Shown here in pieces: positions 26,066 to 55,140 of a stretch of DNA of 64,000 nucleotides. Position 1 is the stretch's first letter. Every line of letters begins with the position of its first letter. Location of the stretch: the NCBI GenBank assembly GCA_964234715.1, contig OZ174278.1; one strand, written 5' to 3'. This stretch comes from Podarcis melisellensis. Taxonomy: Eukaryota. The notes under the pieces were generated by a model. It did no database searches and was not told the origin of the DNA. It saw only the letters and a list, made by a program, of their open reading frames with translations. A program made the translations under genes and the position numbers.

Positions 26066-29000
26066 TCATATTAAAGATTGGGTGTCGGCCTCCTGTGGTA
26101 TTCCAGTTTCTGATACCATTTCATAAAATATGCCTTTCTGTTGTAGCAACCTGGCTGGAGTATCAAATTCAGCAATCCTTCCAGAGTTCAGAACAAGCAC
26201 CCTGAAAGAGCAAAACAATGTAATGGGGAAACCTTTAATCTAGGAAGAGTTAGAGCTGATCAACTTGCAAAATAAAATTTACATTAAGCAGTTCATTTGT
26301 TAATTAAAGATTTCGGGGATGAAGGCTGACTACTTTAAGGCAGGAGAGGGGAACCTGCGGTTCTCCAGGTGTTGCCGGACAGGAGTTGGAGTCTCAGCTT
26401 CCGGAAGGCAAAAGGTTCCTGACCTCCGCAAGGAACAAGGAACAGCGCAGTATAAGAGCACAAGCTCTGCTTATTGAAGATTGAAGGTTAAATTTCTATT
26501 TAAACAGAAGATAGCAAGTGATGTGAAAGACGAAATAACCCAGAGTCAACCGTATTGAGGTAGATGAATAAATCTGACATGATACAAAGTAACTTCCTAT
26601 CTTCCAAAGAACTTTCTTTAAAAAAAAATGCTGACCTCTAAATTCCTGAATGCAATTACCTTTTCATCAAGCAAATTTGATTCTACAAATCTGTGGCTCC
26701 AAAAACACTTAGCCATTGAGCTTTGTGTGTATTACAATGGGCAAATTCTACTGAATCCAGTAGTGCTACTTACCTAACATTCAATAGGCAGCAGATGGCA
26801 GTTCTTTTTTATGAGGAGACAGTCCATGTAAACTGAGGCGGGATGGAGATTTTGTTTGCCCCAGGCCCAAGAAGAAACAGTTTATCCCTTTACTTTCAGG
26901 AGCTGCTTAGAGGGGTGGGAAAACCACATGCCACTTATAGCAACATACCTATCAGAATCCAGTATGGAATGCAGCCTGTGGGCAATGGTTAGTACTGTGC
27001 AGTTGTGGAATTCTGACCGGATTGTGGATTGCACTTGATTGTCTGTTTCCATGTCAACAGAGGCTGTTGCTTCATCCAAGATTAATACTTTCGTCTTTCG
27101 TAGCAAAGCACGAGCCAGGCAGACAAGCTGTCTCTGCCCCATGCTGACAAAAACAGAAATACAGTTTTAGTATGTGCTCTCGAATGGCGCTAGGCCTCAA
27201 TTTCTGATTGGGCAGCTGGTGGCTGCTGCACCATCATGTGAATAGGCATGCAGGTTTTATGTTTGTGTGCGTACACAAAAAAGGATGACTACAGAAGGAT
27301 CGCAGATGTGAACAGTGCTAGGAATATGGATATCCCATTAGAAAACCACTGCTAGTCTGAGAAGCAAATATGGGGATATGTGAACAGACTCTGTCTAGGG
27401 CAGTTTACTATGTGCAAGAACAACCCCCACCCTGCAAAACTCTGGATAGGTCTAAGGTGAACAGACATCCAAGTAGAGAATGGTAATGTTTCTTCATCCT
27501 TTGTCCCTTACTTTGGCCTGCCAAGTAACACTATCTGTGGGTAGCTTCATCAGTAGAAAACCACTTTGGAATACTAGTACTCCTCTGCTAGTGGAGATCA
27601 TTATTCTTCAGGTTACTTAGCTCACCCCTTAACATAGTTTAAGACATACCTCAGGTTTTCACCACCCTCGGAGATCTCATGGAGAAGTTTCTTTGGGAGT
27701 GACTGTACAAAGTTCTTCAAGTCACACAATTCCAGTGCATCCCACAGTTCAAGATCAGAGTATCTTCCAAGTGGATCCAAGTTTGACCGCAGTGTCCCTG
27801 AGAATAAGACCGGGTCCTATGGAATAATGTCTAGACAGTATTTCCATGTAGTATAATATTAGCGAGTTTAGGTTTCAGATTGATAATACTTTTGGGGTGG
27901 GGTCAGGAAGGGCTGCTGTTCCTCCGCCTCCCCTCCCCATCATCAAGCTATTAAATCTTGACTGGTTTTAGATATATTTGTAAAGAAGCAATAGATTGGC
28001 ATCAACCTCATTGAGTGCAAACAGAATAAATGGCAAATTTATTTTTAAAGATAGCTGAATCTGAAGACCAGGAGGGACAGACCATGGGCTGCTATTCCCT
28101 TTCAGAGCACAATAAACTTGGCCAAAGCCAAAGGCTGTTGTCATGCCAGTTATCTTAGAGTAAGCTTTCATCAGAAGGGCAGTTGGAAAAAAGGCAGGAG
28201 ATCAGTAGGCAATGAGAAGCCCATGCAATAGGAAGTGAGAAAGGGGTGGAAAGAACTCTGAAATATGCCACTAACTAGGCATAAATTCCTGAATCCCTGG
28301 GCAGGCATTCCTGATACATGTTTCATATGTTATCCCCTATTTTCCCCTCTCCTAAAATAGTCAGTAAAGGACTGGTTTCTTCCAAGCCAGCAGGCGGTTA
28401 AATGCAATGCAAAATCAACAAGTGGACCTAATGGATTACAATATTTTTTGACAAGTTCATTAAAACTATTGCAAAAAGAATAATGGCAGAATTCAAAAGA
28501 CTAAAGCTTATAAAAGAATTGTATGTGTGGATATTATACAGACACATACAAACACACGCACACAATGCTAACCTGTGGAATAATGTTCAGGTTGCCACGT
28601 AGGTCATGCAAACCAATAGTTGATATATCAATGCCATCAATGATTATTTTGCCTCCAGCTCTTTCTATTATCCTAAACAAACTATTTGTGAGAGTCGATT
28701 TGCCAGCTCCTGTTCTTCCTATTATTCCAATCTGTAACAAAATATATGTGCATTTTAAAATGGTAGCAGTTTCACTATGTTACTTAACACATGCAAAGAA
28801 AACAGTATAGTTCCATATAAAAAAAAGCAAAACGGTTTTGAAAAATAAAAACCTTCAACAAGAAATCTCTACTAGCAAAGGTTAGTGCCCAACATTAGTA
28901 GATAACTGATTGTTTTTTCTGGTTCACACATCAACCACAGTGCTTGTGCCATGCAGGAATATCCATAGAGCTCAACAGAGTGCACCCACCACACAAATAT

Positions 29001-54730: not shown

Positions 54731-55140
54731 ATCCCCGGCTGATCCCGCAGGCTCAGCGCCCGTCGTCCCTAGCGCAGCTTCAGCAACAGATGTTTTCCGC
54801 TTAGCAGCAGCAGCCCCCCCGGACGACGACTGCATCGACAGGCTCGGCTCCTCCGATCGGAAGCGAAAGGAACCAATCTAGCCGCCGGCGGCAAATCGGG
54901 GGCGGAGCTCCCGAACTCAGCCGCCCGGAGACAGCGTTGAATAGAAAGGTGAATGGGGAGATGCGCGATTTATCGCCAAAGCAAAAGTCCTGACGTCCAC
55001 GCCCGCGCGCGTCAGAAGTGATTGCTTCTGATGGCGGGGGAACAGTACACGCCTTTTCCCTTGCTTCCAAGGCGTTAGGACACCGCCGTGAAGTGAAGTA
55101 AGAGCGAGAGACGGCGATCAGAGATAAAGAAACCTGTGAC
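54480..55140 (-). promoter_or_regulatory. CpG-island promoter and exon 1 of ABCC13
   Basis: CpG-rich block containing the first coding exon (donor AAG|GTAATT at 54665), a CCAAT box ~54873, a GC box GGGGCGGAG ~54899 and CRE-like TGACGTC ~54991. Confidence 0.75.

Follow-up and report, generated by a model that had tools for sequence, protein, structure and literature searches.

We analyzed a 64-kb stretch of contig OZ174278.1 from the lizard Podarcis melisellensis (assembly GCA_964234715.1), referred to below as the window, which contains zero runs of N. Between 26 and 55 kb, its minus strand carries many short open reading frame (ORF) pieces with clear ABC-transporter sequence. These join into a gene of 28 exons that runs from an ATG at 54835 to a TGA at 26068-26066, with GT..AG borders at all 27 introns and without an internal stop or frameshift. 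The gene is very likely an intact, spliced and constrained lizard ortholog of ABCC13, that is, a 28-exon 'short' multidrug resistance-associated protein (MRP) of ~1304 aa (1339 with the upstream ATG) with an ABCC-type mechanism. Its features, in the direction of transcription, are as follows (TMD, transmembrane domain; NBD, nucleotide-binding domain; TM, transmembrane helix).

54250-55250, strand not applicable: CpG island covering exon 1 and the putative promoter; GC 0.56-0.60 and CpG observed/expected 0.74-1.04 in 500-nt windows, versus 0.1-0.3 in the flanks
54665-54835, minus: exon 1; donor AAG/GTAATT; longest-ORF ATG at 54835, conserved ATG at 54730-54728 (residue 36)
53116-53177, minus: exon 2, start of the L0 (lasso) linker; 90% identity to Rhineura exon 2
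51244-51385, minus: exon 3 (L0); splice scoring and ortholog locus alignment
50463-50617, minus: exon 4 (TMD1 start); acceptor 50617 gives a gap-free alignment to Rhineura P0416
48440-48617, minus: exon 5 (TMD1); splice scoring and ortholog locus alignment
46795-47049, minus: exon 6 (TMD1); Pfam ABC_membrane, E 3.5e-9
45780-45845, minus: exon 7; splice scoring, present in the gecko locus
44799-44936, minus: exon 8 (TMD1); splice scoring and gecko locus
43809-43955, minus: exon 9 (TMD1); splice scoring and gecko locus
42102-42186, minus: exon 10; splice scoring and gecko locus
41934-42000, minus: exon 11; splice scoring and gecko locus
40534-40660, minus: exon 12, NBD1 Walker A GQVGAGKS (residue 504); splice scoring and motif
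39996-40172, minus: exon 13 (NBD1, Q-loop region); splice scoring and gecko locus
38823-38990, minus: exon 14, NBD1 signature ISGGQ and Walker B LYLLDD (without the catalytic Glu); Pfam ABC_tran, 93% identity to guinea fowl
38533-38719, minus: exon 15, NBD1 H-loop LVTHN and linker start; phase-1 donor CAA/GTAGGT, the sole donor in frame with exon 16
37141-37201, minus: exon 16, small linker exon; acceptor TTAAG/, donor ACAG/GTGAGT; 74% identity at the matching gecko position
35869-35941, minus: exon 17, small linker exon; aligns with residues 699-720 of the turtle linker (E 6e-5 to 9e-5), present in gecko
35396-35615, minus: exon 18 (TMD2 start); splice scoring and gecko locus
34658-34812, minus: exon 19 (TMD2); splice scoring and gecko locus
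32852-33007, minus: exon 20 (TMD2); splice scoring and gecko locus
32253-32452, minus: exon 21 (TMD2); splice scoring and gecko locus
31529-31655, minus: exon 22 (TMD2, TM16 with the conserved NRW arginine); RNA-contig joint 31023/31529 in runs X1 and X5
30922-31023, minus: exon 23 (TM17, clade motif LNFWVRKAC); RNA joints on both sides
29621-29764, minus: exon 24; RNA joints 29764/30922 and 28731/29621 in four of four runs
28573-28731, minus: exon 25, NBD2 Walker A GRTGAGKS (residue 1126); RNA joint and motif
27650-27816, minus: exon 26 (NBD2); RNA joint 27143/27650 in four runs, junction with exon 25 from the arithmetic of a 1251-nt contig
26949-27143, minus: exon 27, NBD2 signature LSMGQ, Walker B LILDE (catalytic Glu) and H-loop IAHR; Pfam ABC_tran and RNA joints
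26066-26201, minus: coding part of exon 28, TGA at 26068-26066; RNA joint 26201/26949 in four runs
25952-25982, minus: two ATTAAA polyadenylation-type signals, 83 and 108 nt past the stop (25982, 25957); motif

Exon 6 (85 aa) served as the single-exon seed for structure and protein database searches. Among structures in the PDB, it scored higher against ABCC2 (86 bits) than against ABCC1 and ABCC3 (~79 bits), with ABCC4 (55 bits), Ycf1, SUR and CFTR far lower. When compared to 1.84 billion representative proteins, its top full-length match was a 1287-aa guinea-fowl protein (P0003; 73% over the exon), and a 624-aa Tupaia protein with the database name 'putative ABCC13' was among the top matches. 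A tblastn search of the window with P0003 returned 25 colinear minus-strand pieces. To choose junctions, every GT/GC donor and AG acceptor near pairs of pieces was scored by frame, stops, alignment and splice consensus, and for 24 junctions the best choice stood out clearly. Turtle and bird homologs, together with sequence inspection, guided the placement of exon 1, the end of exon 15 and the linker exons 37201-37141 and 35941-35869. The Gekko kuhli locus contained the whole series from exon 6 to exon 28 (23 exons, the small linker exons included) in order; exons 1-6 were found at the Rhineura locus and aligned gap-free to its NCBI model (P0416).

An earlier sequence-only reading of this DNA had proposed 28 GT-AG exons in one uninterrupted ORF, two complete NBDs, a CpG-island promoter and an NBD1 Walker A exon at 40534-40660. 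Each of these was reproduced: the ORF holds from 54835 to 26066, Walker A, signature, Walker B and H-loop are found in each NBD, the island is at ~54250-55250 and the Walker A exon is identical to exon 12. Its ORF length of 3885 nt was not, as the 28 exons together give 4020 nt from ATG 54835 (1339 codons and a stop), a 135-nt difference, or to 3915 nt (1304 aa) from ATG 54730. The same reading pointed out that exon 12 is in no listed ORF, which is true but trivial since such lists need a start codon after a stop.

The annotated proteins of Rhineura floridana (P0416) and Anolis sagrei (P0303) both begin at model residue 36, Rhineura has an in-frame stop upstream of the conserved ATG, and position -3 is a purine at ATG 54730 compared with a T (weak context) at ATG 54835. 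For these three reasons, the conserved 1304-aa product probably starts at 54730, and by the same comparisons ATG 54835, in frame 35 codons upstream, is lineage-specific. Over the ~20 codons that immediately precede the conserved ATG, the protein-level sequence is similar to that of Rhineura, despite the Rhineura stop. We give an even chance to the possibility that the gene is real while the 28-exon model is wrong in detail, whether through a start at 54730, alternative use or skipping of exons 16 and 17, or extra 5' non-coding exons. In addition to the ortholog starts and the weak upstream context, this is suggested by a donor at 38529 through which skipping of exon 16 would also be in frame, by the different length given in the sequence-only reading and by a 5' half of the gene that is without RNA evidence. 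Against it, gecko has exons 16 and 17 at the matching positions, both match the turtle linker, and exons 1-6 align gap-free to the Rhineura model.

The gene is expressed and spliced in close relatives of the sequenced lizard. Parts of 26000-32500 were contained in 24 public runs, and 10 of these contained 20-27% of the sampled words, approximately the exonic share. We compared contigs from four runs (four studies, two organisms) with 25700-31699, the 3' quarter of the gene. Four joints (26201/26949, 27143/27650, 28731/29621 and 29764/30922) were found in all four runs and a fifth (31023/31529) in two. Every skipped piece had plus-strand ends CT..AC, equivalent to GT..AG on the gene strand, and introns 22-27 were removed exactly at the borders of the model. 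One 1251-nt contig spans exons 23-28, and the arithmetic of its record includes the exon 25/26 junction. The spliced transcripts anticipated by the sequence-only reading were therefore recovered as spliced RNA contigs from close relatives, whereas its polyadenylation site could be followed only in part: the two ATTAAA signals are in place and contigs extend past the stop to at least position ~25963, but contigs cannot show RNA 3' ends and so do not give the exact site. In run X7 (organism B), a TCA is inserted at 26065/26066 on the plus strand, which places a second TGA beside the stop and leaves the protein unaffected. Some lower-depth contigs were unspliced or carried intron 22. This intron (31024-31528) was retained in otherwise spliced contigs of two runs (X7 record 22, X13 record 8) and removed in X1 and X5.

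The coding sequence is under purifying selection. Based on per-exon codon alignments, the ratio of nonsynonymous to synonymous substitution rates (dN/dS) was 0.135 compared to Gekko kuhli (exons 6-28, 1087 codons; dN 0.087, dS 0.643) and 0.255 compared to Rhineura (exons 1-6, 294 codons), so neither value approaches the ~1 that the sequence-only reading had named as telling against a working gene. Earlier values of 0.168 and 0.374, obtained from whole-protein tblastn high-scoring segment pairs, were discarded because the pairs overran exon ends into introns. At shorter range, the RNA contigs differed from the window by ~0.6% in exon pieces and ~4% in intron pieces, and six of the eight exonic differences were synonymous (two nonsynonymous).

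A gene that is open and transcribed could still have ceased to be useful, as a young unitary pseudogene in the making. Independent decay of ABCC13 has been documented repeatedly, in apes and rodents (PMC4458048; PMC3262805), the Rhineura product stops after exon 6 with later exons unseen within 10.6 kb, and intron 22 is retained in some RNA contigs. We consider this improbable here, given 4020 nt free of stops, 27 of 27 introns canonical, catalytic motifs that are all intact, the low dN/dS with gecko, the 6:2 excess of synonymous differences from close relatives and exons that are ~6-fold more conserved than introns.

Next to these signs of integrity stands the identity of the gene. We built a maximum-likelihood tree of 44 proteins (LG+C20+F+G4, with Shimodaira-Hasegawa-like approximate likelihood ratio test (SH-aLRT) support), in which the lizard model fell within a clade of 24 rows that contains human ABCC13 (P0422, 'ATP-binding cassette protein C13'; SH-aLRT 100, stem 0.63). 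This clade includes human, macaque, Tupaia and other mammals, birds, turtle, crocodile, four squamates, frog, Polypterus and sturgeon, and its internal branching matches the species tree. Its sister group consists of two teleost ABCC2-like proteins (support 99), with ABCC1 and ABCC3 forming separate clades; ABCC2 is the nearest family to ABCC13 in the literature as well (PMC5902450). The model was 77.6% identical to the box turtle protein and 72.4% to guinea fowl; over exons 1-6, it shared 82.5% identity with Rhineura 'putative ABCC13'. Identity was 68-72% for the ferret, tamandua and narwhal proteins, compared with 42-48% for ABCC1-, ABCC2- and ABCC3-type representatives. The gene also lies between an RBM11-like gene (upstream, same strand) and an HSPA13-like gene (downstream, convergent), the position expected for ABCC13. 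Because tree, synteny and identity levels agree, the gene is on these comparisons an ABCC13 ortholog, as the sequence-only reading had proposed, and it does not group with ABCC1 or ABCC2. That it should instead be a member or recent duplicate of ABCC1, ABCC2, ABCC3 or ABCC6 is extremely unlikely and, within the limits of the tree, refuted: database names such as 'MRP1-like', 'ABCC6' and 'cMOAT1-like' among the closest proteins, and single exons that match ABCC2, ABCC1 and ABCC3 structures best in a PDB from which vertebrate ABCC13 is absent, are outweighed by identities of at most 48% to ABCC1/2/3-type proteins versus 68-78% to the human-ABCC13 clade, by support of 99-100 for the separation of the groups, by the absence of the N-terminal TMD0 of the long MRPs ABCC1/2/3/6 and by the RBM11-HSPA13 location.

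The predicted protein is laid out as L0 lasso linker, TMD1, NBD1, linker, TMD2 and NBD2, without TMD0, and single exons match Pfam ABC_membrane and ABC_tran, for two membrane and two ATP-binding domains. Alignments to long MRPs begin at long-MRP residue ~203-207. We found no TMD0-like exon in the window, where searches with the N-terminal 200 aa of seven long MRPs yielded scattered matches at chance level (E >= 0.06), and the upstream space in which TMD0 would lie is occupied by RBM11. The short form is clade-wide: bird and turtle orthologs are 1287-1302 aa, and Pfam PF24357 is found on ABCC1 and ABCC3 rows and on no ABCC13-clade row. ABCC2 (MRP2/cMOAT), the nearest family in the tree and the best PDB match for exon 6, shares the L0 plus 2x(TMD+NBD) core and the asymmetry of the NBDs, but differs by a ~200-aa N-terminal TMD0, by its genomic location and by an identity of only ~48%. 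The short MRPs ABCC4/5/11/12 have the same number of domains and likewise no TMD0, yet are not close relatives, as illustrated by the exon 6 scores of ABCC4 and ABCC2. For ABCC13, the preferred interpretation of the short form is that TMD0 was lost secondarily in the ABCC2/13 lineage.

Both NBDs have a full, intact set of catalytic motifs: Walker A GQVGAGKS (504), signature ISGGQ (594), Walker B LYLLDD (614) and H-loop VTHN (649) in NBD1, and Walker A GRTGAGKS (1126), signature LSMGQ (~1229), Walker B LILDE (1249) and H-loop IAHR (1281) in NBD2. They display the ATP-site asymmetry typical of ABCC proteins, with Asp-Asp in place of the catalytic Glu in the NBD1 Walker B and a degenerate LSMGQ signature in NBD2. 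By analogy, the protein most likely functions as other ABCC exporters do. Substrate would bind between the two membrane bundles in an inward-facing state, and ATP would then close the NBD dimer. One ATP site, formed by the NBD1 Walker B Asp-Asp and the NBD2 signature LSMGQ, would be degenerate; the other, in which the NBD2 Walker B Asp-Glu and H-loop His are paired with the NBD1 signature ISGGQ, would be competent, and hydrolysis there would reset the pump. Because the basic pocket residues (the equivalent of MRP1 K332, a TM16 Arg and a TM17 Arg) are kept, the predicted activity is ATP-driven export of an anionic substrate.

The pocket was compared with the leukotriene C4 site of ABCC1 (MRP1), which has the same core fold by homology (~47% identity to fish MRP1), Asp-Asp in the NBD1 Walker B and a TMD0 that the lizard protein is without. 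Applying one offset of +18 to the numbering recovered the expected letter at all eight TMD1-side residues of human ABCC1 isoform P0336. The K332 equivalent is conserved in the lizard gene, while the other seven of eight differ (H335T, L381Q, F385Q, Y440N, T550M, W553L and F594L). Among these, F385Q, Y440N, T550M and W553L are identical in every ABCC13-clade row covering the position (birds, turtle, mammals, frog and Polypterus), and the F594 equivalent is Leu or Ile in all covering rows of the clade. On the TMD2 side, the 'NRW' arginine of TM16 and the TM17 arginine (WVR) are conserved. TM17 reads LNFWVRKAC throughout the ABCC13 clade, with Lys for Arg in one monkey, versus LNWLVRM(S/T)S in ABCC1, ABCC3 and one of two ABCC2-like fish proteins (NFWVRKAC in the lizard against NWLVRMSS in ABCC1).

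These replacements suggest a hydrophobic subsite unlike that of MRP1/2/3. Because the clade as a whole has replaced the hydrophobic and aromatic residues of the MRP1 pocket, the substrate is probably other than the MRP1 set, and MRP1-like substrates should not be assumed. The glutathione and glucuronide conjugates put forward by the sequence-only reading are possible, but the pocket residues do not point to them. A broader proposal, which we regard as evenly balanced between right and wrong, is that ABCC13 represents an ancient sister lineage of ABCC2 that lacks TMD0 and has its own pocket, invariant from Polypterus to mammals, in which the anion-binding Lys and Arg are kept for a dedicated anionic substrate that became dispensable in apes and rodents. 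If so, the intact squamate copy would be one of many starting points for finding the substrate, for which the clade-wide pocket signature is a usable lead.

Several points weigh against these readings. The spliced contigs come from close relatives and not from this individual, the runs behind them are presumed to be RNA, and they cover introns 22-27 only, which lie downstream of the start codon and of both small linker exons (16 and 17). In the tree, ABCC2 is represented by two teleost proteins only and a verified ABCC6 sequence is absent. The residue numbers of the MRP1 leukotriene C4 pocket were checked for the eight TMD1-side residues, through the one offset in a single human isoform, and TMD2-side pocket residues were compared at the level of motifs only. 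Function is predicted from family membership, since transport or ATPase activity is not known for any ABCC13 protein, and our literature search found no functional study of any vertebrate ABCC13.

The two neighbouring genes are as follows.

57436-62056, minus: RBM11-like gene, upstream neighbour; RNA-recognition motif (RRM) exon 61883-62056 (Pfam RRM_1), exon 58577-58675 and C-terminal ORF 57436-57723
18225-21310, plus: HSPA13-like gene, convergent downstream neighbour; Pfam HSP70 (E 7e-19 and 3e-40), ORF ending at profile position 378 of 599

The RRM exon is 88-93% identical to the RBM11 part of sheep and falcon RBM11-ABCC13 fusion models, and in Rhineura an RRM gene is likewise located upstream of ABCC13 on the same strand. 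An Atlas search with this exon returned generic RRM clusters only. The downstream Hsp70 gene stops right after the ATPase domain, an ending typical of HSPA13, and in the Atlas it matches a cluster labelled 'putative heat shock 70 kDa protein 13'. Human ABCC13, a pseudogene at 21q11.2, lies exactly between RBM11 and HSPA13. Published work places it with these two genes in the LIPI-USP25 interval and reports the mouse ortholog as absent (PMC3262805). In the window, RBM11 and ABCC13 share a strand, and RBM11 lies 2.6 kb upstream of exon 1 of ABCC13. Fused RBM11-ABCC13 gene models exist in birds and sheep (P0191, P0204, P0206, P0305 and P0331), reflecting either read-through transcription or an annotation artefact. 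A GC-rich stretch at 16001-18000 (GC 0.49), upstream of the first HSPA13-like ORF at 18225, is probably the HSPA13 promoter CpG island.

Compared with vertebrate ABCC13 in general, nothing of substance differs: the lizard gene shares the clade, the RBM11/HSPA13 neighbours, the TMD0-less layout, the approximate length, and the pocket and TM17 signature, with 72-78% identity to the bird and turtle proteins. The extras on the lizard side are the in-frame ATG 35 codons upstream and four added residues in exon 17 relative to turtle. ABCC13 is a pseudogene in human (PMC3777468), is intact outside apes and rodents, chicken included (PMC4458048), and has an expressed copy in carp (PMC4825979); published work describes it as functional in chicken, dog, macaque and zebrafish. 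Well over 100 bird and turtle orthologs are present in the protein database, together with Anolis, Varanus, Gekko and Rhineura entries. Since most other vertebrates are known, or predicted, to have an intact copy, an intact lizard ABCC13 is an ordinary, expected finding, and the sequence-only reading overstated its novelty given what had already been published (PMC4458048). What the locus adds is a further ortholog, intact, expressed and under constraint, of an orphan transporter lost in humans, apes and mice, which supports the view of loss as the exception. For a substrate search, the lizard copy is no better than the known chicken, turtle, dog and zebrafish copies.

The more practical consequence concerns annotation. 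Nearly all orthologs are named 'multidrug resistance-associated protein 1-like', with some named ABCC6, ABCC1 or cMOAT1-like and some fused to RBM11. The expectation that pipelines would mislabel or fragment the gene was thus borne out in relatives, down to a 289-aa product in Rhineura. The present locus should be annotated as ABCC13 rather than 'MRP1-like', neither fused to RBM11 nor cut after exon 6, and with the start best placed at 54730. In Rhineura floridana (CM057609.1, locus 10001-32637), the annotated 'putative ABCC13' ends after exon 6, and exons 7-28 were undetected in the 10.6 kb downstream; in the lizard window, exons 7-15 are within 8.5 kb of exon 6. This amphisbaenian may have a very large intron after exon 6; alternatively, its ABCC13 is truncated and would then add a further independent loss.

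At the Rfam gathering threshold, zero matches were found in the 64-kb window. An interspersed repeat is present in at least three window copies with 78-83% identity, at 29850-30120 (intron 23 of ABCC13), 39397-39605 and 9725-9844. In all four of the RNA-type runs, contig depth on this repeat was 200-800, compared to ~10-100 on exons, with many odd joints and loose ends, a pattern that suggests a multi-copy element with high expression. Long (AAT)n/(ATT)n microsatellites at 42972-43140 and 3947-4306, which read as poly-Asn or poly-Leu ORFs, have similar flanks and look like the tails of one repeat family.

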